Assembly: GCA_965202585.1 (NCBI GenBank)
Contig: OZ241829.1
Coordinates: forward strand, 58,962,001 to 59,026,000
Length of the DNA stretch: 64,000 bases
Direction: 5' to 3'
From: Thalia democratica
Lineage: Eukaryota
Each line of letters opens with the position of its first letter. Position 1 is the stretch's first letter. The notes under the pieces were generated by a model that was not told where the DNA came from, did not search any database, and saw only the letters and a list, made by a program, of their open reading frames with translations. Below are positions 19,746-43,800 of the stretch, piece by piece. The position numbers and the translations under genes are program-made.

Positions 19746-19812
19746 ATGAGTAGATGTTCAACATTAATTTCTTGCTTCGTTCTGGTAGCAGCCTTGGCAT
19801 TACAATCGCAAG
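19746..19812 (+). CDS. Exon 1: signal peptide
   Basis: ATG then MSRCSTLISCFVLVAALALQSQ (short basic N-region, hydrophobic core); donor G|GTAAGA at 19813. Confidence 0.8.
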
Positions 19813-22800
19813 GTAAGAACTGTTATGACGTTTTAAGAGAAAAAACTTATTGTAAATTCTTGCACTAAATCCAGTAATTGTCACGTGGAAGTCTGAGATA
19901 AGACAAAGTCGTCGGCGCGGTGGTTTTTGTAATGACATAACGACAAATAAACAAACCAGAAAAATCCCGCACACTACGCACTGGTTTGAACAAATTGCTT
20001 CTGTTTAAATTTTTGGCAGAGAATGAATACATCGCAAAAAGCTGCAGAGTTACTAGATTATTTTTAAGTTTTTGTAGCCGCTTTTACTTGTATGTATTAG
20101 CAACAGTGGTAGCGACAATAGCCTGCGGACAAAAATTATGTTGATTTAGCTGCTATCTAGTTTCGCCGCTTTAAAACGGTAATGGTGTAGGGAGGGGAGG
20201 GGATCTAAAAGACTAATACGGAAATTATTGCGACCACGAGCAGTATGGATCGATTCAATTATATATTTGGCTGTCGACTTTTTTTTCATTTAACCTTGAA
20301 TATAAACGTTAATCAGATTGTTAAAAAACCAATGAAGCTTAACTGCGACTCTAAAAACTAATTTTCGCTAGTTTTTTAACATACTTTTTAAGCTAACTTC
20401 AAACATATGTAGAGATAAAAATAATTAACAAAGTTTCTATTTAAAAGTGTGTAGCTGAGAAAATTCCTTTTAAACTCGATAAACTTTGTATATTTACATT
20501 ACTAAAAAAAATTTAGTAACCAAAAAAAATTACTAGTATGTACTATGAAAAAATATGTCCTAAATATTTTATGGCACTTTCAGTTAGAATCCAATGTATG
20601 TTAACATTTTTCAATACTGAACTTCAAACTGTAAAAATTCCGTGTTTTAACCTATTTAGAATTCAATACTTTGTTTTTCAGCTATTTTGAACTGCTACCA
20701 AGAATGCTCAGTTGCACCGGCAGGCATGGCTTGCTATGTCAACTCTCCGAAAGGGTACAAGTGTGTCTGCCCAGACAGTGATTTTGAAATGAACGGAAAC
20801 TGCGTTTGTGAGTATTGTTTTTTTTTTAACTTTGTAATACTTTTAAATCAGATGTTGTTCTTGAATACACAGAATTTTTTTTTATCAAAAAAAATATTTA
20901 ATGACAACTACTAGGGTGAAATTATTTTAAAAACAAAATTTTTTACTGAATGTATGTTTCCAACACAACTGAGTAACACGTTCTATAACAACAAGTCTAA
21001 AGGGATAATCATAGTTACATCGCACCATGATACTACGAACTTAATGTTTCGCATTCATTATGATTTGTTGCACTAAAGCTAAAGTCGTGTTAAGTTACTA
21101 AACTTACTCGTCTAGTTTTACCAGACAAAAATTGTTTTTACACAATTTTTTATCTATTCTAACTGTTATGACCACAAAGTTATAAATTAGTTTTTACACT
21201 AACTTTATCTAAACCCCTTTATAAAACGCAATTTTCAAAGCCTTTGTTGAAGTATTGTCAAATGTGTTTTCGTCAAAAAGTTGTCAAATAAATTTTTAAA
21301 GTCTAAATAAGTTTATACATATGTTTAGAGTAATTACATAAACTTCGAGATAAAACGGTATACGAACATCAACAATTAAACAGCAATAAAAGCTAAATTG
21401 CTAACTAAACTTTATACTGTTAAAACTCTTTTAGTTTAAATATTTTGTTTATTCTTTTTGTTGTCTTTGCTTATTTTGTAATTAAACTACCAAGTTGTAA
21501 AACAATTTTTCTTAAATACGTTACTTGAAAAATATTTTAGCTCGTTCAAAACTTTCTCCGTCGACCAACTGTGGGATGTGCCCTGAAGGCGCAAGCTGTG
21601 TCAGAACCTCCAGTACGAGCATGTGTCTCTGTGACTCTGGTCTTTACGGATTAGACGGAGTCTGTTACAGTAAGTCGAACTTATTTTAAATCTTTACAAA
21701 AAACTAATATATGTTCAGAAAGATGTAAAACTGTTGTTGTTTACGTAAACTAGTTTTATTTCATATGGATTTAAGATTAAAAATTAAGATATGATTATCA
21801 AGGTTCATTTAAAAGCGTATCTTAAACAGGTGCAGCAACCAACCTACCTGTACAACCGAAGACCACCAGTTCTTTAGGGACTTGTGCCACTGCACCGCCA
21901 TGCGATTCACCTTTTCCTGCGTCCAGATGCATTGCACGAGACCTGCAAGGGAACTCTGTTTGTCTTTGTCAATCTTCCCACATACTAACACCTACTGGCA
22001 GCTGTCAACGTTTGTTATTATTTCTTTGTTGAAACAAATAGCTGAACGAGTTTTTTAGGCATCCGCATTTAGAAAGCAATTTATCAAGTTAAGATTATTT
22101 TAGTTTTTTACACTCGTTGTAATTTTTAATAAAATAGTAAAACTTGCTAAAAAACGAATGTTTAATTTTTTCGCTTTGCAGCAAGAAGCGACTACGAAGC
22201 TTCTTTTAGTCGAAGATGTCCGAGATGTGTGGCCAACAGCCAGTGTCACCTTTACATGAGAAGATTCTGGTGTGTCTGTAAACCCGGATTTTTCGCAAGA
22301 AACGGAGTTTGCAACCGTAAGAAACTTTAGGCTCAGATACAATTTTTAAAAATCGTGTTACACAAATAAAAGCTTAATAGTTTAATTTTTTACTTGTTAA
22401 GTTTTTCAATTTTTTTTTTGTTAATTTTTAAAGCTAAATAATTATGCAGCAATAGTTCCTGTTATAAGAACGAAACCTATGACTACTCTGGCGCCTACAA
22501 TCCAACCTAGAAGTAAGTTATCTAGTATAATTTATTTTTTGTTATAAAGATTGTAGTAATTCAAATTATTTTTAATGCAAAAAACTAATAAACTTTTAGA
22601 TTATATAGTATACAATATACTTAAAACACAAAATCAAACTGTTATAGTAAAAATATTAAGTAGTGGAATTAAATTGATTAAATTTTTTTAATAACTAAGG
22701 TTATAAGTCTTTTTTAATGACTACTTAAGTTAAATTTAGTTGAAAAAACTACCTATACAACTATGAACATTTTTTTGAAACTAATTTAACAAAGATAAGT

Positions 22801-25800
22801 TACAAACAACTTTAAACTAGTTTGCATTTAATGTTAAATACTCGCAAAAATTATTATATTTTTTTCGAAGTAAATATAAAGTTTCATTATTTTTTGAAAT
22901 TTGTTTATGTAATTTCTATGGATTTTGAAATCCAGCTGTGACATAATTAAAAAAAAAACCATAAAACGATAAAAAATTTAAAGTGTTGAATTAAACCAAA
23001 CGGTATATATATTGTTTATTGAACGACAAAAAGAGCGCTAAAAATATACTGTTCTAAGACCTGGTGCACGAGAAACCTTTCGGTTATCGAGTCGCACTCC
23101 ACGGATACCTTTTAACGTCTTTTCTAGGACTGTATAGGACACAAAAGTGAACTTGAGCTTTAGTTTATATTAAGTTGCTTAGCAATATTTAAACACATAA
23201 AAGTAAAACAGTGTATCGTTGAAACAATTCCATTACTAAATTTTTACAACTTTTTTCTTATTTGTTTACTGTTTAAACTGTCTCTAAACACTACATGGTA
23301 CCATATTTCAGAAAAGCAAGCAGAATACCAAATTTTTTAAGATATATAAGTTAAATATTACAAAAACAATCTTGACACAAACAAACCCATAGATCATCAA
23401 AGCAAATTTTAATAAATTTGTGCACATTAAATGTTGAATAAGTGTTTTAAGATCCGAAAAACTAAAAACATCATAAACTAATTAAAAACTTGAAACTGAT
23501 TTTTAATTATAAAACCAAAGTTATAACACTTAATGTAAACTAAAATATCAACTGTGTATGGTAAAAAGTTGGAGTAAGGTAACATTTTTTTACGGTTTAC
23601 TTTAAATTAAGAAATATAATCAAAAATATTTTAGTTTTAATTAATTCTTTTGTTACAATAAAATTTCATGTGTAAATATTGATTATTTTTATTATTTAAT
23701 AAGTTTGATATACCTTATAGAAGTATGAAAATATTTTTTAAATATGTTAATAATCTAGGTTTTCATTTGAGATATACCACTGCGCATTAAGCTTTTATAG
23801 AAACAGTTAAACTATTTAGATTTATTTATCGTGCTTAATTCTTAACTTTAGTATTAATTTTAATAACTGAAAAATTCTAGTTGATAAACATTTTATGCTA
23901 GTTTTATAACCAACTTAATTTTTGAAACAGTCACATGCACACTGCCAAGACAACTGCCCATGAACGTCATAGTACCTGCAGTGCAAACGTACGCTGTTGG
24001 AGACCAGGTTGCACTTCAGTGCCCACCTGAATTTGACCAATCAGGTGCCACATTTACCCGATGCGGAGCTAATGGACAGTTTAGCGTAATTGATACTGTA
24101 TGCAAACAGAGTAAGTTGAGGCATTTTAACAATAAAAAGACTTTTAACTAGGTGAAAACTGAACTGTAGAATTGAAGTTTATTCGTTTAATAAGAAATTG
24201 TGTGCTTTATGTTCTACGAATTTAATCTTTATGTAAACTTACCTTTGAAAAAGATTCAAACTAAGATTTTTTTTAACAAAAAACCAACAAAGTTCCTAGA
24301 ATTTGCTAACCAAGTTTTTATTAATGCTTATCGCTAAAAAAACCTTATTTTTACAGAAGTGATCTATGGTGACTGGGAAATTGGAGAGTGCAGTGTCACT
24401 TGCGGCATGGGAACAAGATACGATGTTAGACAGTGCTTGCAAGGAGTATGCCGCGAAGGTCTTATCAGAGCTGAGCTTTGTCGACTTCCTGCTTGTGTAG
24501 CTTACAGCGATTGGAAATTGGGAACTTGCAGTGTAACTTGCGGCAGTGGAGTGCAAGTAGACACAAGGACGTGTTTGCAAGGAACCTGCACTGGAGAGCT
24601 TATGAGATCAACTCCCTGTGTTAGGGAAGTTTGCGCAGAGTACGGAGACTGGGAAATTGGAACTTGCAGTGCTGAATGCGGAATAGGAATGCGAAGAGAT
24701 GTAAGAGCTTGTATTCAAGGGACATGCACTGACAGCCTTGTAAGATCGGTTCCTTGTGAAGGATACGATTGTGAAGTGTACAGTGACTGGGTAGCAGGAG
24801 AATGCAGTGTCACTTGTGGAAGCGGAGTCAGCACTCATACCAGAACTTGTGTGCAAGGTAAATGCACGGAGAGCCTTATGAAAACAGTTCCATGTGAGCG
24901 AGAAGTTTGTGTAATGTACGGAAATTGGGTAATGGGAACTTGCAGTGTTGCTTGTGGTACAGGTGTTAGAGTTGATACAAGAGCTTGTATACAGGGTGCA
25001 TGTGAAAATCTTGTAAGAACAGTCACATGTGAACAAGAAGCATGTGTCGTTTATGGTGATTGGGAAACAGGATCGTGTAGTGTTACTTGTGGTCAAGGAG
25101 TAAGAGTCGAAACAAGGTTATGTTTACAAGGGGTATGCACTGAGGCTCTTTCAAGATCGTTTCCATGTGAAAGACAAGCTTGCATCGAGTATGGTGACTG
25201 GCAAATAGGAACTTGTAATGTTGCATGTGGAAAAGGAGTTAGAATTGACGTTAGAGAGTGTGTACAGGGAAATTGTGATGAAGATCTTGTAAGAACGATC
25301 CCATGTGAAAAGGAAGCTTGCGTTATCTATGGTGAATGGGAAATAGGAACTTGTAATGTTGCTTGTGGTACAGGAGTAAGAGTTGATAGAAGAGCGTGCG
25401 TACAAGGCGTATGTACTGAAAGCTTAATTAGATCTGTTCCTTGTGAAAAAGAAGCTTGTGTTATCTACAGTGACTGGGAAGCAGGATCATGCAGTGCTAC
25501 TTGTGGCTCGGGAGTACAAGTTTACAGAAGAACTTGCTTGCAAGGTGATTGCACCGAAGACCTTGTACGAAGAGTTCCTTGCGAAGGACCTGTATGCGTA
25601 GTTTATAGCGAGTGGTTTATAGGATCATGCAGTGCTACTTGCGGTTCAGGTGTAAGAGTTGACACTAGAGAATGTTTGCAAGGTGTTTGTACTGCAGATC
25701 TTCGAAGAACACTTCCGTGTGAGGAAAGCGTCTGTGTTGTATACAGCAACTGGGAAATAGGAACATGCAGTGTTGACTGCGGTACAGGAGTAAGAGTCGA

Positions 25801-28800
25801 CACAAGAACTTGTGTTCAAGGTAATTGTCAAGAAGACTTAGTACGTTCAGTCACTTGTGAAATGCCCGTTTGTGTAGTTTACAGCGACTGGCAAATAGGA
25901 GCATGCAGTGTTAGCTGCGGTATGGGTGAGCAAATTGATACAAGAATATGTGTACAAGGCGTTTGCACTGAAGATCTTACAAGAACAGTTCCCTGTGTCA
26001 GAGAAGTTTGTATTGTTTACAGTGAATGGGAGATAGGAACTTGCAGTTCAACCTGTGGTTCTGGAGTAAGAATTGACAGAAGGACTTGTTTACAAGGTAA
26101 CTGCAAAGAAGATCTTATAAGGTCTCAACCGTGCGCTACAGGAGTTTGTATTGAGTATGGTGACTGGAAGATAGGCTCGTGTAGTGCTACTTGCGGTGTT
26201 GGTGTACAAGTTGATAGGAGATCTTGCACCATAACTTGTTATGGCGAATCTTCCTTAACAGACGAGTGTTCGCAAGCTTCATGCACAGAAGACCTAGAAA
26301 GAAGAACTACGTGCGAGGAAGATGCATGCACTGGGGTGTACGGTGCTTGGCAAATTGGAATGTGCAGTGTTACATGCGGTAGTGGAGTACGTACTGATAG
26401 AAGAAGATGCATGAACAACTACTGCGAAAATGATCTTCTAGTGAGAAGTGTAAGTTGTGTGCAAGAAACTTGTGTTATTTACAGCGATTGGGAAATAGGT
26501 ATGTGCAACGCTGCTTGCGGTACTGGAGTGCGATACGACACAAGAACATGCCTTCAAGGTAATTGCACTCAAGATCTTGTGAGATCCGTTCCTTGCGAGG
26601 GACCAGTCTGCGTAGTTTACAGCGATTGGATGATTGGATCTTGCAGTGTTACTTGTGGATCAGGATTAAGAGTAGATAGAAGAACATGCATACAAGGCTT
26701 TTGTACTGAAAGTCTTGAAAGAACCACGCCTTGCGACGCACCTGCTTGCGTAGTTTATAGCGACTGGATGATCGGGTCTTGCAGTGCAACTTGTGGTTCT
26801 GGAGTGAGAGTCGACAGAAGAATTTGTGTTAGCGGTGCTTGCACAGAAAATCTTATGAGATCAACTCCATGCGAAAGAGAAGTCTGCACTGTTTATAGCG
26901 AATGGATGCTTGGCACATGCAGTGCTACATGCGGCTCAGGCGTGAGAGTAGATCGAAGACTTTGCTTACAAGGTTCGTGCACTGAAGATCTAGAACGATC
27001 AGTTTCTTGTGACACACCTGCTTGCGTAATATACAGTGATTGGATGATCGGAACTTGCAGTGCTGCTTGTGGATCTGGAATAAGAACCGACACAAGAATT
27101 TGCATACAAGGGCTGTGCACAGAAGAACTTTATAGGTCTATTCCTTGTGAGAGAGAAGCTTGCGTTGTTTATAGTGACTGGTCTATTGGAACTTGTAGTG
27201 TCACTTGCGGTTCAGGAGAAAGAATTGATAGAAGAACTTGTATTCAAGGTAAATGTACCGAAAGTCTTATGAGATCAACACCTTGCGAAGCACCTACTTG
27301 TGTAATTTATGACGAATGGGTTTTAGGAGAGTGTAGTGTTACGTGTGGTTCTGGATTCAGAGTCGACCAAAGGGCATGTATTCAAGGACTTTGTACTGAA
27401 GATCTTATGAGGTTCACACCTTGTGAAAGAGAGGTCTGTGTTGTTTACAGCGAATGGACTATAGGATCCTGCAGTACTACGTGTGGCTCAGGAGTAAGAG
27501 TGGACGAGAGAGCTTGCATTCAAGGTAGATGTACTGAAGACTTGTTCCGTTCAATTCCTTGTGAAAATGCTGTTTGTGTTGTTTATGGCGACTGGCAAGT
27601 AGGATCATGTAGTGTTACATGTGGTTCTGGAATTCGAGTTGACCAAAGAACTTGTGTTCAAGGTATTTGCACTGAAGATCTTGTAAGGTCTGTACCATGT
27701 GAACAAGAAGTTTGTGTGATTTACAGCGAGTGGGCTGTTGGATCTTGTAGTGCTACTTGTGGTTCAGGTGTGAGAGTCGACACTAGAGAATGTTTACAAG
27801 GATTTTGCTCTGAAGATCTTTCAAGATCAGCTCCTTGTGAAGGACCTGTATGCGTTATTTACGGCGAATGGAATATTGGAGAATGCAGTGCCACCTGCGG
27901 ATCAGGAGTAAGAACTGATACAAGATTGTGTGTTCAAGGTTACTGTACTGAAGATCTTGTTAGATCAACACCTTGTGAAAACGAAGTCTGTCAAGTTTAC
28001 AGTAGATGGACTGTAGGAGCCTGTAGTGTCACTTGTGGCTCAGGAGTAAGAGTTGATACAAGGGCATGTATTCAAGGTAGATGTACCGACGCCCTTGAAA
28101 GAACTGTTTCGTGTGGAGGAAGGGTTTGTGAAATCTACAGCGACTGGGTTGTCGGAGCTTGTAGTACTACTTGCGGTCCTGGTGTAAGAGTTGATACAAG
28201 AAAATGTGTACAAGGATTTTGTACAGAAGACCTCAGAAGATCGATTCCTTGTGAAACGAGAGTTTGTGAAGTTTATAGCGATTGGTCCATTGGTGCTTGT
28301 AGTGTTACATGCGGTTCAGGATACAGAGTCGATACAAGAAATTGCATCCAGGGATTTTGTACTGAAGACTTAAGGAGATCAACTCCATGTGAAAGGGAAG
28401 TTTGTGTCGTCTACGGAGATTGGACAGTTGGGTCATGCAGTGTAACTTGCGGTTCTGGAACGAGAGTTGACACTAGAGAATGTATACAAGGAAGATGCGA
28501 TGAGGACCTTATGAGGTTAACTCCTTGTAGTCAAGAAGTATGTGTACATTACAGTCAGTGGAGGATTGGAACATGCAGTGCTACTTGTGGTAAAGGTGTT
28601 AGAGTGGACAGAAGAAGTTGTATACAAGGTGACTGTACTGAAAATCTAGTAAGAACAACTGATTGTGACGGACCAGCCTGTGTAGTTTACAGTGATTGGG
28701 AGATAGGAACTTGTAGTGTAACTTGCGGCTCTGGAATGAGAGTTGATAGAAGGACTTGTATACAAGGAACTTGCACTGAAAACCTCTTTAGATCAGTTCC

Positions 28801-31800
28801 TTGCGAAAGAGAAGTTTGTGTTGTCTACAGCGATTGGACAATAGGATCTTGCAGCGCTACTTGCGGTTCTGGAGTAAGAGTTGATAAAAGAGCTTGTATA
28901 CAAGGTAGATGCATTGAAGATTTACAAAGAACAGTTCCCTGTGAAAGCGCAGTATGTGTTATCTATAGCGAATGGTCAATTGGAACTTGCAGTGCTACTT
29001 GCGGTAGTGGAGTAAGAGTTGATGAAAGACAATGCATTCAAGGTGATTGTACAGAAAACTTATTCAGGTCAACTCCATGTGAAAGTGCAGTTTGTGTAGT
29101 TTACAGTGATTGGGTAATGGGAGAATGCAGTGTAACTTGTGGATCTGGAGTAAGAGTCGAATCAAGAAATTGTTTACAAGGTTTCTGTACTGAAGATTTA
29201 ATGAGAATGATTCCCTGTGAGAGGGAAGAATGTGTAGTTTATGGTAATTGGGAAATAGGATCTTGCAGTGCCACTTGTGGGTCGGGCACAAGACTTGACA
29301 CAAGAAACTGCTTACAGGGTACTTGCACGGAAGATCTTATGAGAACAGTTCCTTGTGAAAGCGAGATTTGTGTTGTCTACAGTGACTGGATGATAGGTAC
29401 ATGTAGTCATACTTGCGGATCAGGTTTAAGAGTTGATACAAGGACTTGTATCCAAGGTAGATGCACAGAAAGTCTCGAAAGGACGACTGCTTGTAAGGAA
29501 GAAGTTTGCATAGTCTATAGTGACTGGGTAATTGGAACCTGTAGTACTACATGTGGCTCAGGAATTAGAGTCGATACAAGGCAGTGCATTCAAGGATATT
29601 GCACTGAAGATCTATCAAGATCAGTTCCATGCGAGAACGAAGTCTGTGTGGTTTATAGCGAGTGGATGCTAGGTTCATGCAGCGTAACTTGTGGTTCTGG
29701 TGTTAGAGTTGATCAGAGGTCTTGCTTGCAAGGAACTTGTACAGAAGATCTCTACAGGTCAACTCCATGCCAAAGAGAAGTTTGTGTAGTTTACAGTGAA
29801 TGGATGATGGGAAGCTGCAGTGTTACTTGTGGCTCTGGAATAAGAACAGACAGAAGAAGATGTTTACAAGGTACTTGTACAGAAGATCTCGAAAGATCAA
29901 CGCCCTGTGAAAGAGATGTTTGTACAGTTTATGGCAACTGGGAGATTGGCGTTTGCAGTGTTACTTGTGGCTCTGGATTTAGAGTTGACACAAGAGATTG
30001 CTTACAAGGAAAATGTACAGAAGATCTCATGCGATCAGTTCCGTGTGAGGCACCAGTTTGTGTTGTTTACAGTGAATGGACAATCGGATCTTGCAGCGTT
30101 ACTTGTGGTTCAGGAATAAGAGTTGACCAAAGACGTTGTGTGCAAGGAAGGTGTACTGAAGATCTCTCCCGAACAGTCAACTGTGAACAGGAAGCTTGCG
30201 TTGTATACAGCGAATGGATGATAGGACGCTGCAGTGCAACTTGTGGCTCTGGAACAAGAGTCGATACAAGAGATTGTGTCCAAGGAAGATGTACTGGACT
30301 TCTCATCAGGTCTAGTCCCTGTGAAGCAATTGAATGTGATGTATACACTCAATGGACCATAGGCGAATGCAGTGCGACCTGCGGTTCTGGAGTAAGAGTT
30401 GATTTCAGAAAATGTTTACAAGGTCGTTGCACTGAAAACGTTGTAAGGTCGACTCCTTGTGAAAGAGAAGCTTGTGTAGTGTATGGAGATTGGATGATCG
30501 GAACCTGCAGTGTAACATGCGGTTCAGGTGTTAGAGTTGACAGAAGAAATTGTGTTCAAGGTAAATGCACAGAAGACTTAATGAGATCAGTTCCTTGTGA
30601 AAGAGAAGTCTGTGTGGTTTATGGAAACTGGATGATCGGAGAGTGCAGTGCTACTTGCGGCTCAGGTGTAAGAGTTGATAGAAGACAATGCATTCAAGGC
30701 GTTTGTACGGAAGACTTAATGAGATCAATTCCGTGTGAAAGTGAGGTATGTGTGGTTTATGGCGAATGGGAAATAGGACAATGCAGTGTTACATGCGGTT
30801 CTGGAATGAGAGTTGACACTAGAAAATGTATACAAGGCATTTGTACTGAAGATCGCGTACGTTCAGTTCCATGTGAAAGAGAACTCTGCGTAATTTACGG
30901 AGAATGGAAAATCGGAACATGCAGTGTTACATGCGGCTCTGGATTGAGAGTTGACAGAAGAAACTGTGTTCAAGGAAGATGCACTGAAGCCCTTGAAAGA
31001 TCAGTTTCTTGTGACGGCGAAGCTTGTGTGGTATATAGTGACTGGACAATCGGAACTTGCAGTGCAACTTGTGGTTCAGGAATGAGAGTTGATATGAGAA
31101 CTTGTGTACAAGGAACTTGCACTGAAGACCTTTACAGATCAGTTCCTTGCGAAAGGGAAGTCTGTGTTGTATATAGCGATTGGACAATAGGATCTTGTAG
31201 TGCTACTTGCGGTTCTGGGGTAAGACGGGATAGAAGAACGTGTGTACAAGGCAGGTGCACTGAAAGCCTTGATAGGACCGTTCCATGTGAGAGGGAAGTT
31301 TGTGTTGTATACAGCGATTGGACAATAGGATCTTGTAGTGCTACTTGCGGTTCAGGTGTACGAGTTGACAGAAGAAGATGTGTGCAAGGCAGGTGCACTG
31401 AAAGCCTTGATAGGACTGTTCCATGTGAGACAGAAGCCTGTGTCGTCTACAGTGAGTGGGTCATGGGTCAATGCAGCGCCTCTTGCGGAGCTGGAGTAAA
31501 AGTGGATAGAAGATCATGCATACAAGGTCCCTGTTCTGAAGACCTCATAAGATCGTCTCCTTGTCAACGAAGTGTGTGCGTTGTGTATGGTGAATGGACA
31601 GCAGGATCCTGTAGTGTTACTTGTGGTTCAGGGCTGCAGATAGAAAGAAGAGAATGCTTACAAGGTACATGCACTGAAAGTCTTCGAAGAACAATTACTT
31701 GCGAAAGAGAAGCCTGTGTCGTCTACGGAAACTGGGAAATGGGAACATGCAGTGTTACTTGTGGTTCAGGAATAAGAACAGACAGAAGAGAATGCTTACA

Positions 31801-34800
31801 AGGCACTTGTACTGAAAGTCTTCGAAGATCAGTTTCTTGTGAAAGAGAAGACTGCGTCGTCTACGGAAATTGGCAAATGGGAACATGCAGTGTTACTTGC
31901 GGTTCAGGAGTAAGAACAGACAGAAGAGAATGCTTACAAGGCACTTGTACTGAAGACCTCGTAAGATCAGTTTCTTGTGAAAGAGAAGCCTGTGTCGTCT
32001 ACGGAAATTGGCAAATGGGAACATGCAGTGTTACTTGCGGTTCAGGAATAAGAACAGACAGAAGAGAATGCTTACAAGGCACTTGTACTGAAAGTCTTCA
32101 AAGATCAGTTTCTTGTGAAAGAGAAGCCTGTGTCGTCTACGGAAACTGGCAAATGGGAACATGCAGTGTTACTTGCGGTTCAGGAATAAGAACAGACAGA
32201 AGAGAATGCTTACAAGGCACTTGTACTGAAAGTCTTCAAAGATCAGTTTCTTGTGAAAAAGAAGCCTGTGTCGTCTACGGAAACTGGCAAATGGGAACAT
32301 GCAGTGTTACTTGCGGTTCAGGAATAAGAACAGACAGAAGAGCTTGCGTGCAAGGAGATTGTACTGAAGACCTCGTAAGATCAGTTTCTTGTGAGGTTAG
32401 CGACTGCCAGGTTTATAGTGAATGGAGAGTAGGAGCTTGCAGTGTTACTTGCGGAAGAGGGTTAAGAGTCGACAGAAGAACTTGTGTCCAAGGAGATTGT
32501 ACTGAAGATCTTGTTCGAGCCACTCCATGTGTACTCGCCGATTGCAGCCGTCAGGGTTAATTGTTTTTTAAGTTACTTTGAGCTTATAGTTTAAAAAATT
32601 AAATAAATTTTGAATTAGTTTTTTACAATAAACAACTAAATTTTACATTTTTATGAAAAAACACTCATGGTTATTATAAAACATACAACATATTTTATTA
32701 TTTTAAATTTTTAGTTATTTAAATTTTGTTTTTGGGTAATATGGAAAAAATAAGTAAAAAACTTAGTAAGAAACTTAAATTTCGGTTGCACGACTATTCA
32801 AATTTGGACAATTCAAATTGCGACAATTCAAATTCTTAATTAAAATTTGAAAGAGTCACAACTATAAAAGTAATGTATATTTGTCAAATATAAAAAATAT
32901 ATATGTAGGTTCTATTGATATCAACAAGCCATTTTTTTCTTTATGTAAAATATTAAGTATTTTTCGAGATATGGCTTAAATAAAACTCTTAAAAAACTAG
33001 ATAAGAAATGTTAACGTTTTAATTTTAGCATTTGCTTTTTATTTTTTGTAATAAATCGCTCGAAAACTCACTTGAAATAAAATAGACGTTGTAAAAATTT
33101 TAAAGTAACACTTCTACAACTTAATGTTAAAATTATTATTTGCTTTATTTGCAAAACTATAAAACAGTTATACAAGTGTTATGACATAAAAACTTAATTC
33201 TTTACTATTTTCAGTTCTTTGTGATTTACCCGACCTTGGTCCAAATATGGTGAAACCTTTTATTACAAGCTTTGTTGTTGGTGACTCATGGAATTTGAGA
33301 TGTATGTACGGATATGAACTGTCAGGAAATACTAAAATAACGTGTGGGGCAAATGGACAGTTTTCAAGCGTCAGTGCTGCTTGCACAAAAAGTAAGCATT
33401 ATTTTTATTACGTAACATTAATTAATATATTGTGCAAACTTTGACAAGGTCGAACTTTTGTCTACTAAATAAAACATGTTGTGTAAAATTTGAATTAAGT
33501 GTGTCTTGTCTCTATTATGACTTTAACACAAAACTTTTCTTAGCTTAAAACACTTTATCGATGTAAAACATAATCAGAGCTGTAAAAAAATCATCTGACT
33601 AAAACTTTAGAGATAAAAACAACTATAATCCCTTAAAGACAAAGATGGTTTTTCAAACCTTAGTTTTTAACACAAAAATAAATGACACTACTTGTCAACT
33701 AAAATTAAAAATAAAACCATCTAGTACCAGTCATGCCAACCACTTGTGAAATACCTGTTATTCCGCCTTACGCTCTGCGAGTGAACGACCAGCAATCTTA
33801 CAAAGTTGGAGACACCATGGAGCTTGCGTGCAGATCCGGATACACCATGGACGAATCCAGCTCAAGCACGTCACTTTGCCAACCGGACGGAACCTTTTCT
33901 GAAATCCGTCTCGTTTGCAATGCGGGTAACTTTTAAACATCGTTTGTACATTTGTTTTACATAACCGACGCTGTAGAAACATAGACAATCTGCAGCAATT
34001 GGATGTTTAAGCTAACAGAACGCTGTGTCGCTCGATTTTGTTTAGACTGTAACAGCTTATTTTTTACTAATTTAGATTTAACTTTCAGGACTTAAAGGTT
34101 TATATTGACTTTGATAAAGACAAAGAGTATAATAAAAGTAAGGATTTTGTAAACATTGTAATACAAGCAAACTCTGTAAAAACCGTTTAAACTTTGGTTT
34201 GTATGGTTAATTCATACTATATTTATCAAACAAGACTAATTTAAACTTTAAATAATATGTTTAAGTATCTATTGAAAAGTTAAATAAAGGCGTATATATA
34301 ACCTTTTTCAAGTTAAGTGTAACGTTAAATAACGAACTCGTAGGATTTTTTTATGTTAAAGCGTTTACATTTTTAGATTCAAAATTATAACTTTTACCTT
34401 TTAAGTGATATAATAGACAAGAAAATTTAATTACCATAAAAATGACCACAAATCTTCAATTCAAAGTTTGTATCACAACAGTTAATTTCACGTTATCAAA
34501 TCTTGGTGAAAACATGTTCTTACGCTTCGTAAACTCTTTTGCATTTGGATATTATTTCAATGTTGTGTGCGAGTCGGGATACAGTTTAGCCGGAAAGTTT
34601 CAGATTACTTGTGGCATTAAGAGAAATTTCAGCGCTACCAAGGCCGCCCGCACCATAGGTACCCAGTGTGAACTAACGTTTTAAAATATTAGTTTTTCCT
34701 GCAGAACAACTAGAGATTAGTTAAATTTAACTAACAGTCACTTTCACCACTACCAAAAACCTTCATGTCATAATTAATTCGGATGTAAAAAGCTTTAATA

Positions 34801-37800
34801 AAAAACCCGAGGAGTCTTACAGGGATGTATAGTAAGTATTTGTCGATAAAACAGACTAAATTCGTTTAATAACGGATTGTACCAATAGTTTTTCAAACTT
34901 GTATTTTGAAAGTTTAAGTTTTTTGTCTAGTTTTTCTTTGCTGAATTAACTTATTGGGTTATATATAGTGTTAAGATTCTTAATAAAAAATAAACAATAA
35001 TCTTCTTTAAAACTATAACAAGTCAAACGGATTTAAATACACACTTTTAGTTAAACTTACGCTGTTAATATTTGATTGTAATTATAAGCCCTTTTTATTT
35101 TATTTGTAAGCTTGCCTTACTTTTAGGTATTGTCAAATCGCCCTTTACTAAGATTTAGCCAATTTCCAGATTTACAGTCATTTAAAAAAGTCAATACTTT
35201 AAGTAGATAAAAATGTTAAGTATTGCTTCGTTTAAAAAAATTAACTTTAGCTCCAACAAAATTTAAGCTAAGTGTGATAGCATTTTACAAAAAGTAGTTA
35301 ATCATTTAAATTTTTTAACTTACCGGTCAAACGAAAAAGTAATTGCAGATACGGGATAGCGGTAACAGTCGGTGTAATTTTAATGCTAATATAAGATCAA
35401 AGTGCAGATCATATCAAGCGCGATACAGTAAAACGATTACCCTGCAGCCACGAATACACATAAGCGACTACCGTGTTGCAATTTACTCATACACCGTGTG
35501 ATAATATCCAGTGATTAGATCAGTAACTAGAGGCCATAAAAACACAATTTACAGCAGGCGTAAAAAGTTGTGTTGAAAAATATTTTGTTTCAGTGAGCGG
35601 ACCGTTTAACTAATCTTAATGTAGTTTTAAAGTGCTTTGTACGTGCTCAGTTTGTTTTCAGTTATAATATTTTATCTTTAGTTTAGTTCAAAAAGTTACA
35701 AATAGTAGCACAAAATCACATTATGTCAAACATCATCAAGTTTTTTAATCAGATGGAGGCTTCTTCATGGGAATATTAAGATCGAATACTAATTAATAAA
35801 AAATTAACTCGACTTCAAGTCTACAAAAAGAAGCCTTTGCACTCAACACTCAATTGCATGCTACTCAACACACGTTGTGCAAGGACTAAAATTTACAAAG
35901 CGCATATGGTGCTTTAGTTTTTATAAAATTCAAACAAACTTTTTATGTTAAAATGCTTTAACTTTTTTTTTGATATACTCATTTATTTTCTCAACTAGAA
36001 CTGAAGGTTTTATGCACTGCATATGCTTTGTAATTTTTGCCAATTTTTTACTCGTTTGCACAAAAAGACATCATCAGTTCAAATTTTCAGCTGACATACA
36101 GTCTTTTTTTTTTGTCATTTGCATATTTTATCGCTCATTTTATGTTTTAACTAATTTGCTCGTGAATAAACCATCACATAAATTTATACATTAGCATGAT
36201 ACTTTGTTTTTCTAACATTATGTAACTCGATAAACACACTTTCAAGTTTTATAAAGTTTTATAGTTGTTTTAAATGTTTTTGTTTTCTAAGACTTTTCGA
36301 AACTTAAAGTTATAAACACTTGTTTAGACCAACCTTAAACTATTATTAGTCTACAAGTTAGATAATTGTTAAAATATCTGAAGCAAATTAGTTTATCATC
36401 TAAAATTTATATTTGGTTTCAACCATATTTTAAGTATTATTAACATCATTTATCAGTTTCTTTGTGCCTGTATTTTTAACAACCTATATAGCTTCATTGA
36501 AGGTTTAAATTGTAACTTATTTTATGGAGGGCAAAGTATTTTACACTACTAAAAAACTTCTAAAAGATTTTTTTTTATCGTTTTAGTTTTTTCAAGTCTA
36601 TCATTTATGATAAGCTAAAAGAACGTTAACAAAAAGTATACATTGAGTTAAGTTGTTTTATTTAAAAAGTATTTCAGAAACGAACTTAACAATGATCAAA
36701 CAAGTAAAAGTTTTCTTAACCTTTTATAAAAACTTGGCTGATAAAATATTTGTTTGACAAGTTATCTCTAACTAACAAACAAAACAACATATGTAAACTA
36801 TAAAATGTTTGACATATTTAAAACTGTTTCATGTTTTAAGATTTTTAAAAGTTTTAATTTGAAAAAAATATTCAGTATTAGTTTATTAAAAACAATGATG
36901 GGTTATAATCATCGGAAAGAAGTTTAGTGTTATATTTATAAACTCATTATCGTGAATATCAAAAAAATTTAAAAGTTAAAACAACAAATGGAATACTTTG
37001 GACAATATTTAACAGCTGAAGTTTTTAGATTTTTTCATTAAAAAAACAACTTATCAATTTATACTTTAGCGTACTTTCTATTTAGATATAGTTATGTTGT
37101 ATAAGTAAACGAAAAAGGTTGCTTGCTAAGTTTTTAAACTAATTTTTTCATAAAAATACTTTTGTTTAGTTTGTGTGGTATGCAATGCAATATTATAGCA
37201 TGAACTTTCTTTAGCTAAAATTAACTTGTTTGTGTGTTTTCTAACTAACTGTGTTAAATATTCTATATACATATTAATGGTGATAATTATTAAGTAAATT
37301 AAGGAGTTAACTATCTTTAAAAATAGTGTCAAGGTTTTTATCAAATATTCTGCCTTTAAAGCCTTTTAAAAAATAACTAGATTTTTTTTTATTGCAAAAG
37401 CAAATAAATAAACTTTAAAAATTTACTTTAAATTTTGTAAGAGCACAATTCTATTTAGATCAACTACATCAATAGTATAGTGTCAGTTGACTCATTTTTT
37501 CTTGCGTCTAGTCAAGTAAAAAGAAATTAATTTAAAAGCTTTTTTTAATTTTATTTTTTAAATCATAAAACAATTTTTCAAGTTTTTTTTGATTATAAAA
37601 CTAAATACTTTATATAACAATTTTTTTTAAAGAACTTTTTCATTCAATACAACTTTATTTATTATGTACACAAAATATTTTAAATACTGCTTTCATGTTA
37701 AAAATTAAGGTAAAAATTTTTTTAAATTAATGTACTAATTTAGAATGTTAAAAATATTACATTTCTAACTAAATTCAATAAAATTCAATAAATACGTATT

Positions 37801-40800
37801 AAACTTAACTTTTATTTGGTTTATGTTATTGAACTGTCATTTAAATGAAAAAAAAACAAACAAACTAGAACTTTCATCCAAATTCAACTTTGATTATCTA
37901 TAAAAGCAGCTTTAAGCAAAATTAGTGAGTTTTTTGATTTTAACTTAATATTTTTTTACTTCATAATTTGCAAAATTATAACATATTTATTTTTAAAGAA
38001 TAGCAATAAAAATGTACAAATATTATCTAGTATTGTGAAGTATTATGAACTTCAAAAGAAGTATTTCAAGTTCAACTAGACGAATAAAACTGATTAAGTT
38101 ATGACCAAATTTCAATACTCCTAGTTTGCTAAAAGTAACTTAAAAATAGCTTATACAGTTGAAACAATGGTAAAAATGTTTTAGAAATTTCACTGTTCTC
38201 GAAATGTAAAGTATTTTTTTCATAACTAAACAAATTTAGAATATCTATTTATTATAAAAAAGTTTAAGAAATTAAAGAACATATTACGATAGTTAACATT
38301 TACACTGTTTTGTAAAACGAATTTCAGTACAAAATAAGTTTTTGTTTTTTCTAAACTCACATCAACTCTAATGACCTTTGGCTGTTATACTGACTCCCTC
38401 GGGTTATTTAATTTTTTTAACGTGAGCTTTAGCTACAACCACGTGCGTTGAATTTCTTCAATAAAAGTTTAGATTATAAAACATTCAAGTTTTACAACAA
38501 ATCTTTAGATTCTTTTAGGTTTATAAGTAGATACTACATAGAAAATCTAAAACCACTTTTAAACGTTTAAAAGATTTTTATTGTTTGTGTAAATGATTTC
38601 TATTTTTAACAGTTACTTGTGTTGCACCACTGTTGCCTGATGGTGCTTCAGCTTTTGAAAAAGAAACGTACACGTTTGGAGAAAATGTAACAGTACAATG
38701 TGAAAATGGGTACATTCCAATTGGTGATATGATAACGACTTGTAATGAGAACGGTACATTTACTGATCTCTTTGGCTATTGCAACTCAAGTAAGTTTTAA
38801 AACAAGTTGTAACTAAAGTTAATTGTAGTTAAAAGTAAATAGTTGAAAACGATTCCGATCATCTACATTCCACAGTACACAGCACAAAAATAATATCTTA
38901 AAATAAAAAAACAATGATGTTTTTCAATTTAGAGTTAAACTTTTTTTTCTAAACTACAGTTCGCGTGTAAACAATTTTTATTTAATCAAAATGTATCTTG
39001 TTAAAGTATAAAACGTTTTAGTCTTATTTTTGTGTTTACTTTTTATATCTAGATATAGCTCTAAATCGTTTTTTAAGCTTTTTGCTACGGTTATTTTGAA
39101 ATAGTTAAACATTAGAATTACAATTAAATTTGAGTACTTTAAAATATTTCGTTTAAGCTGTTTTTTTAGTTTTTTAACTACTATTTTTTAATAAAATATT
39201 TGTTTATTTTCAGACAGTTTTAATTAATTTTATTATTTTTTTTTAATGTTGATAAGTAGTCGCTGCTAAAAACTTTGTTATTATAAATATTTTATGAATC
39301 ACTTCACTAATACATACATAAGGTAAAAATCTTTTAACTTTTTATAAATTTTTTAATCATTACTTAATAAATTAACACTAGAACAACGTAATGATTTTTC
39401 GCATGACTTTTATTTATATTTTTGAATGCTTTTTAGATGAACTTAAATCTTTTTAGTCTAAACCTTTGATAAATTAAAGCCTGTTAAAACGTTAATTTGT
39501 TAACATGTCTTTATAACCATTTGTTTATAGAAAATATTAGATTTTCTAACCTTGTCTCTAGTAAACTTGATGTTTTTTTTAATGATACCGTCATTTTGTA
39601 TTTTATTTTGTTATCGTAGCTTTGAATACTAGCAACTTTGTAGACTTTACAGCTTAAACTGTTACCTTTACTCTTTTAATAACATTTATTCTTGCAAAAG
39701 CATAAACTTTTTTTTGTACTTTTTGCTTTGTTTTAAACGTAAGTAACCTTGAAAATTTGTAACTACTAGTTTTGAACTTAAGTAATTTATTATTTTTCAA
39801 CAGTTAGATGCGACGCTCCCTCTGTACCTGTAAATGGAATTCCATTCGAAGTAACTTCATTTGGATATGGAGAGTCAATTTTCATCAAATGCAAACCTGG
39901 ATACCAGAACGTTGGTGATGATGGCGCTGTTTGCATTGAAAAAGACTCTTTTGTATACCTTGAACCGTTCTGCTCCCCAAGTAGACAAATTGAAATAAAT
40001 TCTTAGTATTTTTGTTTTATCTATCTTTTTTTATCCATTGGTTTGAAAACAGGTGTTTTTCTTTAAGATTTCAGATATCGCTTATTTTGAAAACTTAAAA
40101 ACTAAGTGTTATGTGATAAACAAACAGTACCTCGACTTTTTTAGTTCAATGCATCCCGCCAAACCCACCTGCTAACGGCAAGAAACAGCAACTTAGATTT
40201 TACGAGTTTGGAGACATAATAGCTTTCCAATGTATTGAAGGGTACTTACCTGTGGGCGACTTGACATCAGTTTGTGGAGAAGATGGCACATTTGAGTACT
40301 CTGACATTAGTTGTGCACCAGGTAAAAAAAAAACTTGTACTTTAATGACTAACCTAATAAAGTAAGTCTATTATTTAGAGTTTTACTTCATATTTGTTTA
40401 AATATCATTTAAACAACTTAATAATTTTAAGCAAACTTTTTGGTTTCTTTCTACAAGCAAATAAAATTATAAAAACTTAAAAGTTTTCTGAAACCACATT
40501 TGTTGTTAAGCTAAAAGTTTTTAATCAATAACTGGAAATTTTATACAAAAAGTAATGTTTTAAAAAACTTTTTAATGCTAGAATAGATAGGTAAATAAAA
40601 ACTAGTAAGCTTACTTAAAAGTATTTGTATACAGACTTTATACTTATCTAAAATTTTCATTATACCTTATTGAATTATCAAAAACTGTGAATATTTTTTT
40701 TTATTAAAATTAACTTTTATTACAATTATCTTTTATTATCATATTTATTACTAAAATAGTTTTTTTTGTAGTTAAGTGTCCTTTACCTTTCATACCACCA

Positions 40801-43800
40801 TTTGCAATGCAAATTGGAAGTCAGACTTCTTTTAACTTTGGAGATGTGCTTGAAGTAAGTTGTAAAGAAGAATACGTTAAAGATGACAAAAGCTTTACAC
40901 GATCAGTCTGTCAAGCTGACGGCACGTTTGATAAACTGCTTATTGTTTGTAATAAAGGTAAGTTTAAGTTATTTAGGGTATTTCAATCTATTTATTCTTG
41001 TCAAATTTTATTTTTTTACAACAAAACATACTTTTTATGCTTCTTAGAAGAAACTTCAGGAGAATCTGGATTGGTAAAGTGCAAAGATTACGACATGCCA
41101 ACAAACTCAGCTACTGCAGTTAAAACTACTTACAATGTAGGCGAAGTTCTAGAGGTCAAATGTCGGGATGGCTACATTTTATTGCAAAATGAACAAATTG
41201 TTTGTGGGCCAAATGGAAAATTCAACAACGTTTTTGTTGTGTGCTTACCAGGTATACAAAATATTGAAGATAATACATTCAAAAAATTATTTAGTTATAA
41301 AGATATTCTCAACAAAGCTGCTACCAAAAAAAACTTAAATTGAACTTACACATGAATTTTTTTATCTATTTTAGTTGGCAAAACGTTCTACTTTTTATGC
41401 AAAGTGTAACTCAAAATAACAAGTGTTAACGTTTACACAAAAAGGTGGATTCGGCACAACAGCTAGAACAACTACAACGACGATGGCCCCAACTACAACC
41501 ACAACAGCGTTCGTAACTCCTGTTGTATCAACGAAGTGTGTGGTACCCACTTTGCCACTGAACACAATTCAGCTGACAAAGGTGGAATATGAAGTGGGAG
41601 AGGTGATCGCTCTCGAGTGCAAACCAAACTATGTCTTAGTCGGCGTCAACTTAGCCATTTGTCAGGTCAACGGTCGATTCAGCAGTATTGACTTTGAATG
41701 TCAACAAAGTGAGTACCGTTTATCAAAATTTATTTTTCTACCAGTAAACTACCCTTTCAAGTACAATGAATATTATAATGAGTTTTAGTATTTTTTATAA
41801 AGAGAACGAATCATACTTATTATTTTACTTTATCGACCAGTTTCCTTAATACCTTGATATTTTATATCGTGTTGATATTTGCTTAAAACAACATAGTTTT
41901 AACTTATGTCAGAAAGTCATTCGTATTGTTTATGATCTAATTTTTTGCAGTTGCTGGCCCAGTAATAACCACTGTTGCCCCAGTAACAACTACAACCGTC
42001 CAACAACGCGTTGTCACTTGTAAAACTCCTGAATTACCTCTGAACTCTATAGAAATAACAGATAATGAGTTTAAAGTCGGAGACTCTATCATAATAAAAT
42101 GTCAGGTCGGATTTGAATTAATCGGTACAAAAACTAGAACCTGCTCGGACACAGGTCTTTTCTCAATCTCTAATGCCCTGTGTGCGCCAGGTTAGTGTTG
42201 TTGCATTTTTTTTGAACAAAAATTTACAAAAAAACAACTAATTTTTAATTTAGCAAACAACGTATATTATTACTAACTGCTAAATACTCAAAATATTGAT
42301 TAAAACCTACACAATAATTACTTGATCTAATTAAAAAAAGAATCTCTAATTTTTTAAATTCTGTTTTGTTTATTTTACTTCAAGACTTGTTGTGATTTTT
42401 ATAACCATAATTTTTAACAACCATGCAACCACAGTTATCTGTGTTTTGTCCGGAAATTTGGAGAACGGACAAATTTTGCCAATTGGTCAGCAATTGTGGG
42501 ACGTTGGTGAAAAAGCAAGTTTTGAATGTGGTGAGGGATACATAGTTCAGGGTGCCGACTCGATTACATGCCAAGCTGACGGTGGTTTTTCTGACAGAGT
42601 TCCTACTTGCGGTAAGTTTAACTTTTATTTATTATACACACAACCGCAACGGAAAAACTATAACTTTGTGTCATATTTTTACATGTTTAGTAGTTTTTAG
42701 TTAAACTTTTACTATGAAAACTTCAAGTGTTTTCCGACATTTCTTCAACCTCAACAGTGAAAGTAAACTCTTACTGTACAAATCCACCAAAAGTAGACAA
42801 CGGCAGTATTGAGCCAGTACAAGCTTTATACCAAGTAGACGACATAATCAACGTCGTTTGTGACGAAGGTTTTACGTTGGTAGGTGAAGCTACTCTTTCT
42901 TGCAATGCAGATGGAAGCTTTGGTTCAATCGCACCTAAGTGCATTATCAGTAAGCTTTCAAGTTTTTTATTTTTCAAAGTCAGACTGTAAGCGCACCTAT
43001 TGTTTTACTTACCACTGCTTAAAAATATACAGTATTTTTTATGTAAGCTAACTTGAAATACTTATCAAAAGCAACCGGTTCTTGTGATACCGTCTACATC
43101 GGTGGAGGGTTTTCAGTTTCTGAAAAAACAAGGTTCAACGTCGGAGAAATAGTCTTGTTCGAGTGTTTTCCCGGTTACAAAATAAAAGGATCGGGGGCAA
43201 GCGTTTGTCAAGATGACGGAAGCCTGAGCGAAATTCCTACTTGTGTTTTAGATGAGTCTGGTTAGTAGTATTTTTTTTATTTTAAATTACTTGCGTAGAT
43301 TGAGATTATTTAAATTGTAACTTCCTACGAAGTTTTATTAAACTTTAATCCATAAATGTTTGTTTATGTTAACTTGTTAAGTCTAATTTTATAAACTTAG
43401 ATTTTAGTACAAATACAATTGTATTTACTATAGTATTTTTGTATGTTTAAAAATAACTAACGGAAAGATGAAACAACGTACAAAATAAAGTTTTCTCTTC
43501 TCTGTTTGTGTTTAAACAGGTTTTTGAAAAAAAAATACAAAATCAAACAGTTTTATATTTTTTAATACTTTGTAATCAATCATAGCTTAAAAGTTTTCTT
43601 ATTTTTTTAACTTAACTACTCTAAAATTATTTTGTAGAAACATTGAGTAAAGTATACACTTCTAATAATGATTTAGAAATTTATATTAAAAATAAAAATA
43701 TTTGTTTTAGTACTGCAGTTTTTTTTCTCTTAACTGTTAAGAAAAATTTTGAAAATATTAACATAAAAAACAATCTAAGATATTTGAGTAATTCAGTTTC

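Follow-up and report, generated by a model that had tools for sequence, protein, structure and literature searches.

A Thalia democratica gene carries 59 thrombospondin type 1 repeats in one intronless exon of 8,199 nucleotides

How can a gene that gives nearly every domain its own small exon hold 59 tandem modules in a single exon, and is that exon a routine part of the message? The question is raised by a window of 64,000 nucleotides from the genome of the pelagic tunicate Thalia democratica (GenBank assembly GCA_965202585.1, contig OZ241829.1; G000:C5:58962001-59026000), in which a gene on the forward strand carries an array of thrombospondin type 1 repeats (TSRs) in its eighth exon. The flanking exons 7 and 9 encode complement control protein (CCP, or Sushi) domains, and the gene has paralogs at three other loci, namely, two near-identical copies on chromosome 6 and a tandem copy upstream of the window (Table 1). 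Exon 8 is probably a real and normally included internal exon, within which an intronless TSR array multiplied and grew by unequal crossing-over or gene conversion.

Structure of the giant exon and its repeat units

Exon 8 spans positions 24357-32555 on the forward strand and has a length of 8,199 nt (3 x 2733), with phase 1 at both ends, each neighboring exon supplying one codon base. It lies in a stop-free frame of 24338-32557 (listed as an open reading frame [ORF] at 24359..32560, 2733 aa). The acceptor AG is at 24355-24356 and the donor GT at 32556-32557; with a caret marking the splice boundary, the acceptor reads ...ttatttttacAG^AAGTGATC at 24355-24357 and the donor reads ...CGTCAGG^GTTAAT at 32555-32557. 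Splitting the exon by its motifs gave exactly 59 in-register TSR units, of which 55 are 46 aa (138 nt) long, with unit 5 having 45 aa, unit 14 having 61 aa, and units 15 and 59 having 47 aa. A 138-nt period was also detected by Tandem Repeats Finder. The G+C content is 42-45% over most of the exon versus 22-30% in most of the DNA around it. Since 2,733 codons run without a stop and with a strict 138-nt period amid surroundings of 22-30% G+C, a chance origin of this ORF is excluded. The ORF, the splice sites, and the unit split thus agree with a first-pass annotation of the sequence, which had placed all 59 TSRs in one intronless phase-1/phase-1 exon of 8,199 nt between two CCP exons.

The first 460 aa of the array matched the Pfam family TSP_1 (PF00090) in eight stretches (E = 1.4e-35, 121.6 bits), and a profile of the units matched solved TSRs of thrombospondin-1 (7yyk, E = 4.3e-7; 3r6b and 1lsl), TRAP, and F-spondin. 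The six conserved Cys, the C-S-x-T-C-G core, and the Arg ladder of TSRs are all present, and units 16-58 show little or no variation in the six Cys or in the motifs G-x-C-S, C-G-x-G, and R-x-D-x-R. There are 356 Cys in the array, and 52 of the 59 units contain C-x-x-S/T-C-G, which is the O-fucosylation consensus of POFUT2. The W-x-x-W tryptophan ladder, the C-mannosylation motif, was looked for as a further TSR hallmark, and no W-x-x-W/C motif occurs in the array, each unit having one Trp (Y-x-x-W). By these motifs, the unit is a stripped-down 46-aa variant of the TSR. An AlphaFold2 model of three units, aligned only to the array's own units, had a mean pLDDT (predicted local distance difference test) score of 29.6, too low for any use in judging the three-stranded, elongated fold of TSRs. 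The exons on either side, of 180 nt (exon 7) and 177 nt (exon 9), each encode a single domain with four Cys in about 60 aa, and both match Pfam Sushi (PF00084) beyond its curated cut-off (E = 2.8e-5 and 1.5e-7, respectively).

Transcription and inclusion of the giant exon

The 31-mers of exon 8 are present in five marine metatranscriptome RNA runs from two studies, and contigs of four of these runs were aligned to positions 23800-29799. This RNA evidence consists of assembled environmental contigs, from which rare variants drop out. In these contigs, exons 6 and 7 and the start of exon 8 are confirmed. The GT..AG joint 24110->24357 is carried by contigs of X1 and X2, two runs of one sample, none of the listed contig pieces falls inside intron 7, and the loose end that precedes 23931 corresponds, with two mismatches, to the last part of exon 6 (22483-22512). 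Beyond the junction, contigs of 442, 104, 346, 2,321, and 2,295 aligned bases tile 24357-29791 (units 1-39, two thirds of the exon) at 2-4% divergence, with no inserted or deleted letters and no canonical internal splice joint in that interval; the first-pass annotation had suggested looking for cryptic junctions inside the exon, and none that is canonical came to light over these 39 units. Of the contig differences, 40 are listed and 133 more are not shown; the 40 comprise 22 synonymous and 18 nonsynonymous changes, with no Cys or Trp affected, a pattern that points to purifying selection in a slightly divergent population, either of this species or of a sister species.

Two kinds of irregular alignment were considered as splicing and rejected. 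Internal "joints" with skips of 739-2622 nt or backward jumps do not have GT..AG ends, and their intervening letters match 29932 and 30203, past the aligned stretch, which identifies them as the ends of long contigs that aligned to units of similar sequence. The one AG..GT joint, 24107->25874, whose two sides are separated by the letters TGAAA, comes from a transcript of the upstream paralog: the loose end of its contig exactly matches the first TSR unit of that paralog, and TGA^AA is the paralog's own exon junction. Past 29791, the long contigs of X1 and X2 resemble the start of unit 41 (two mismatches to 29932) and not unit 40, and this jump could be a one-unit difference between populations or a chimera of graph assembly.

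The same contigs bear on the suspicion that the array is an assembly artifact, a tandem repeat collapsed or inflated, for which there is a reason in units 54-58, where exact repeats of up to 112 nt are error-prone for assemblers. However, the metatranscriptome contigs, an independent source, follow the array in order and with no indels along units 1-39, 82-89% of the sampled words of the exon were found in DNA runs, no 31-mer is repeated in 23880-29880, and the paralogs carry similar arrays. An artifact is thus hardly credible.

The first-pass annotation had gone further and called exon 8 a cassette, whose skipping would let one locus make a short EGF4-CCP15 form besides the giant one. Part of that proposal stands: skipping keeps the frame, the flanking exons encode related CCPs, and removal of exon 8 leaves an open frame of 1,225 aa, near the ~1,210 aa that had been estimated. 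However, all 20 of the 20 internal exons of the gene are symmetric, phase 1-1, with lengths divisible by 3. Because symmetric phase is general to the module exons of this gene, it is not evidence of regulation, and the in-frame skip does not discriminate between the readings. Among the X1 and X2 contigs that pass the donor of exon 7, all continue to 24357 and none skips exon 8, and no loose end was seen at 24110, within the limits of contigs that drop rare variants. In addition, the short flanking introns favor inclusion, and the shorter members of the family are separate genes, such as the upstream copy with nine TSRs. Regulated skipping of exon 8 is accordingly very unlikely, and we would give just as little credence to a stage- or developmentally regulated switch between an EGF/CCP protein of ~135 kDa and a 59-TSR rod form of ~430 kDa. 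If the exon were such a cassette, it would, at 8.2 kb, be an unusually long one.

Inclusion by default would instead follow from the introns. The introns of 246 and 659 nt that flank exon 8 may allow splice sites to pair across introns (intron definition), and their shortness would then explain how an exon of 8.2 kb is spliced. In a passage of PMC2614967 that cites Sterner et al. (1996), large exons with small flanking introns are expected to be spliced by intron definition, under which exon length is unlimited.

The 3' junction of the giant exon

The exit from exon 8 was predicted by comparison. At the position of this gene's G^GTTAAT donor, the arrays of the chromosome-6 paralogs close with G^GTTAGC, and the CCP exon that follows those arrays is 49% identical to exon 9. 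Both the acceptor and the donor of exon 9 are kept in a 626-nt DNA contig from a related organism. This contig, from a Tara Oceans metagenome (ERZ976226; ORF P0191, which reads on into the intron), contains exon 9 and parts of both flanking introns at 88% identity to the window, and it places a close relative of the gene in open-ocean samples. A query with the end of the array for transcript-derived protein fragments gave no match, queries with exon 9 for such fragments returned only the DNA-derived P0191, and exact-pattern scans of Joint Genome Institute (JGI) metagenome contigs with the start of exon 9 and the end of exon 7 were empty.

An alternative is that exon 8 also serves as a last coding exon, with intron 8 retained or the transcript cleaved there, giving an EGF4-CCP-TSR59 protein without the CCP tail. 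An in-frame stop does stand directly after the donor, GGT TAA here and GGT TAG in the chromosome-6 paralogs, and the comparative nature of the 3' junction leaves room for such an ending. However, the same G^GTTAG arrangement recurs at donors 42190 and 43260 of this gene, so that the stop, judged from these sites, is a by-product of phase-1 donors of the type G^GTTA(A/G), and exon 9 has kept its phase and sequence both after the paralog arrays and in the related organism. We therefore regard a terminal exon 8 as unlikely.

Growth and age of the array

The units of exon 8 resemble one another more than they resemble those of related genes. For 54 of the 59 units, the best match lies inside the array itself; units 16-53 have a mean mutual identity of 67%, and the identity of units 16-59 to the chromosome-6 units is 56%. 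Units 1-15 are more diverged, at about 56%. At the other end, units 54-57 have 2-12 differences per 138 nt among themselves, unit 58 is identical to unit 57 over its initial 66 nt whereas the other 72 nt contain 26 differences, and a shared 9-nt patch sets units 55 and 58 apart from units 54, 56, and 57. Units 54-58 are a mosaic with a breakpoint in the middle of a unit. Such a mid-domain breakpoint indicates unequal crossing-over or gene conversion inside the exon, since exon duplication yields none of this kind. A higher-order repeat in this array, proposed from Tandem Repeats Finder periods of 276 and 414, was not borne out by lag analysis. In the 55-TSR array of chromosome 6, a two-unit higher-order repeat is found mid-array, where 46- and 47-aa types alternate.

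On chromosome 6, the open frames of the two loci measure 2601 and 2598 aa, and each holds 55 TSRs in one exon; the loci encode a signal peptide followed by EGF-EGF-linker-TSR55-CCP, the EGF exons being homologous to exons 4 and 5 of this gene. The upstream paralog consists of a signal-peptide exon, four EGF exons, three CCP exons, and a 9-unit TSR exon that ends in TAA at the point where likeness to this gene stops. Its third CCP has 82% protein identity to exon 7, and its array is collinear with units 1-9 at 76% versus 64-70% off register. This paralog is transcribed: RNA run X1 shows it spliced at the CCP-to-TSR junction homologous to the one here, and run X4 contains a further segment of it. 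Positions 24764-25039 (units 4-5) are 88-99% identical to the upstream paralog, including an identical run of 72 nt, versus 55-84% elsewhere in the collinear 1.25 kb; the RNA contigs break at the edges of this tract, which is likely a gene-conversion tract between the two genes.

The arrays share marks of position as well. In all four loci, 8 nt separate the acceptor from the Tyr codon of unit 1, and the donor position is common to this gene and the chromosome-6 loci. In this array and in that of chromosome 6 alike, index 14 is taken by an aberrant unit of 61 aa that contains an insertion of 15 aa, and units 1-15 are 56% identical to the chromosome-6 units of the same index versus 50% off index. 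Judged by the shared acceptor and by this 61-aa unit, the array was already intronless and had at least about 15 units when the C5 and C6 genes separated. A protein search for orthologs with a 2,732-aa query, against proteins of 1,503-4,781 aa, returned nothing above 35% identity and no protein of this genome; at several other loci of the genome, TSR hits lie in open frames of 440-650 aa.

From these observations, a sequence of events may be proposed. Exon 8 would have kept the outer boundaries and the 1-1 phase of an ordinary single-TSR module exon while its TSR unit multiplied, without introns, to the present 59 copies. At least about 15 units would already have been in place, intronless, before the gene family duplicated, and the array may then have continued to lengthen and homogenize by unequal crossing-over and gene conversion of 138-nt units, with breakpoints that ignored domain borders.

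How the array became intronless in the first place admits another answer, namely, that the ancestor had one TSR per exon and lost adjacent introns through recombination with reverse-transcribed mRNA, intra-exonic growth coming later. The other TSR genes of the genome, which have one TSR per exon and the same type of outer boundary, are compatible with such an ancestor, as is the Oikopleura gene discussed below, with up to 13 TSR motifs per open frame. In addition, mRNA-mediated concerted loss is given as the standard explanation of extraordinarily large exons in a passage of PMC2614967 citing Niu et al. (2005). The junctions inside the array speak otherwise. They consist of the last Cys, two residues, and Tyr, and they are about 3 aa shorter than spliced single-TSR junctions (Cys-Pro-Gly plus two or three residues). 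The residues at the ends of the exon (KVI... and ...SRQG) are absent inside the array, and no intron-bearing ortholog that would polarize the change was found in protein searches. We consider intron loss a possible but doubtful origin.

Several points weigh against the preferred reading, that of a normally included exon whose intronless array multiplied internally. The junction 32555->33215 would follow from comparison, the RNA contigs having been aligned to 23800-29799; its donor GTTAAT is a poor match to the usual consensus, and TAA comes next in frame. For units 40-59, the intronless state is read from the open frame, and the tails of the long contigs are unplaced. All of the RNA support comes from environmental contigs of a population that is 2-4% diverged.

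Exon duplication and the CCP exons

Outside the array, the gene follows another mode of growth. In the 22-exon model, every other domain has its own exon of 126-264 nt, much as the first-pass annotation had described (~130-260 nt). A maximum-likelihood tree of the CCP exons contains the firm pairs 33715/40714 and 45751/46486 and a cluster of the neighbors 38597/39782/40120, all of which fit growth by exon duplication. With these CCP pairs on one side and the array-specific similarity and mid-unit breakpoint on the other, the two modes that had been proposed for this gene, exon duplication and intra-exonic crossing-over of TSRs, are both upheld.

The claim that exons 7 and 9 are sister duplicates fared less well and has only moderate support. 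Both exons encode CGANGQFS, and because it is written with different synonymous codons in the two, this common stretch is not the result of recent conversion. They are reciprocal best matches within the gene, by the narrow margin of 41% versus 39% for the next CCP, and their DNA identity is 55%. In the tree, a group that joins exon 7 and the third CCP of the upstream paralog with exon 9 and a CCP-like pseudo-exon in intron 10 has support of 86/79, below the threshold for a firm branch, and exon 9 is nearer to the CCP of chromosome 6 (49%) than it is to exon 7. The pseudo-exon at 34467-34658 has exon 9 as its nearest relative (97/89 tree support) and is probably a decayed exon duplicate.

The whole gene and its surroundings

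The gene encodes, in order, a signal peptide, four EGF-like exons, a Pro/Thr linker, a CCP, the 59 TSRs, and 14 CCP exons with two Thr-rich linkers, so that there are 15 intact CCPs besides the degenerate CCP-like pseudo-exon. Its introns have a median length of 246 nt, and the least certain part of the model is the 3' terminal exon and its stop. The predicted product has 3,958 aa, ~429 kDa, and a pI (isoelectric point) of 4.8. It is probably an extended, acidic, disulfide-rich rod, and a structural role in a secreted matrix or mucus is a guess. The coordinates of the features are given in Table 1.

Table 1. Coordinates of the gene, its parts, and its paralogs (window positions unless a sequence is named)
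Feature	Position	Strand	Description
Gene	19746..46791	+	22 exons, phase-1 AG/GT sites, open coding sequence of 11,877 nt
Exon 6	22450..22512	+	Pro/Thr-rich linker; junction 22512->23931 from RNA contigs
Exon 7	23931..24110	+	CCP/Sushi, phase 1-1; both ends set by RNA contigs
Intron 7	24111..24356	+	246 nt, GT..AG; joint 24110->24357 in RNA contigs
Units 1-15	24365..26479	+	Older, more diverged part of the array, matched by position in paralogs
Unit 14	26156..26338	+	Aberrant 61-aa TSR with 15-aa insertion and two extra Cys; marker common to chromosome-6 paralogs
Units 54-58	31724..32413	+	Youngest copies, mosaic
Intron 8	32556..33214	+	659 nt, donor G^GTTAAT; in-frame TAA if unspliced
Exon 9	33215..33391	+	CCP/Sushi, phase 1-1; Pfam Sushi match
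Pseudo-exon	34467..34658	+	CCP-like, in intron 10 (4.7 kb); open, phase-1 AG/GT sites, fourth Cys changed to Arg
Chromosome-6 paralogs	G000:C6:26446273-26454075 (L013+L017); near-identical copy at C6:23.40-23.42 Mb		3 Mb apart, opposite orientation
Upstream tandem paralog	G000:C5:58930668-58936348 (L015, L019)		25.6-31.3 kb upstream of window start

A short dispersed, satellite-like repeat with a 15-nt period (CGACAATTCAAATTG) occurs in intron 8 at 32784-32839 and recurs upstream of the gene at 626-677 and 888-945, as well as near the upstream paralog at C5:58940743-58940947 and 58942941-58943127. Downstream of the gene, an open stretch at 52615-52863 matches caspase (Peptidase_C14, E = 3.8e-12) and is part of a neighboring gene.

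Significance and comparison with known systems

Exon 8 is of a known kind, in which it is the largest so far seen; it adds evidence on age and mode of growth and no new mechanism, and the understanding of such genes is unchanged by it. No paper about the gene family or about single-exon TSR arrays came up in literature searches. The gene unites two routes by which modular matrix genes lengthen, whole-exon duplication in its CCP part and intra-exonic recombination in its TSR part, and the paralogs would date the intronless array to before the duplication of the family. As one-unit-per-exon TSR genes are present in the same genome, both architectures can be compared under the same splicing machinery. 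In practice, gene finders and short-read assemblers will mishandle such exons. The protein is highly represented in plankton metatranscriptome contigs and is a candidate structural component of the secreted matrix or mucus of a pelagic filter feeder.

Within the family, the chromosome-6 genes and the upstream copy have the same compact 46-aa TSR unit, the one-exon array, the acceptor position, and homologous EGF exons. The chromosome-6 genes also have the same donor position, the 61-aa unit at index 14, and a CCP exon after the array. What sets this gene apart from them is its four EGF exons, the CCP ahead of the array, the 59 units, and the 14 CCPs of its tail; over the 3' three quarters of the arrays, divergence or homogenization of the units has proceeded independently.

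In other TSR genes, the module is usually kept apart. A TSR module in most animal matrix genes occupies its own phase 1-1 exon, and the vertebrate genes for thrombospondin, hemicentin, and SCO-spondin likewise give each TSR an exon. The same holds for other TSR genes of the T. democratica genome (C4:57.29 Mb and C10:32.93 Mb), which have one unit per exon with the same type of outer boundary, ...C-x-x-G^GT, and for a TSR-Sushi-trypsin gene of the ascidian Clavelina lepadiformis, in which an intron lies between every unit. These genes keep the intron between units, whereas exon 8 has none over 59 units. Several TSRs per exon do occur in another pelagic tunicate, in a gene of Oikopleura dioica (that of protein P0003), which has open frames of 311, 679, and 620 aa with 4, 13, and 7 TSR motifs, respectively; however, it has 30% identity and a vWA domain at its end, it is not an ortholog, and its largest frame is about one-quarter of the length seen here. 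A single very long exon of head-to-tail coding repeats, whose length changes by unequal recombination, is familiar from mucins, AHNAK, filaggrin, and titin. Exon 8 belongs with these in its form and differs from them in its unit, which is a disulfide-bonded, folded module rather than a low-complexity or linker repeat.

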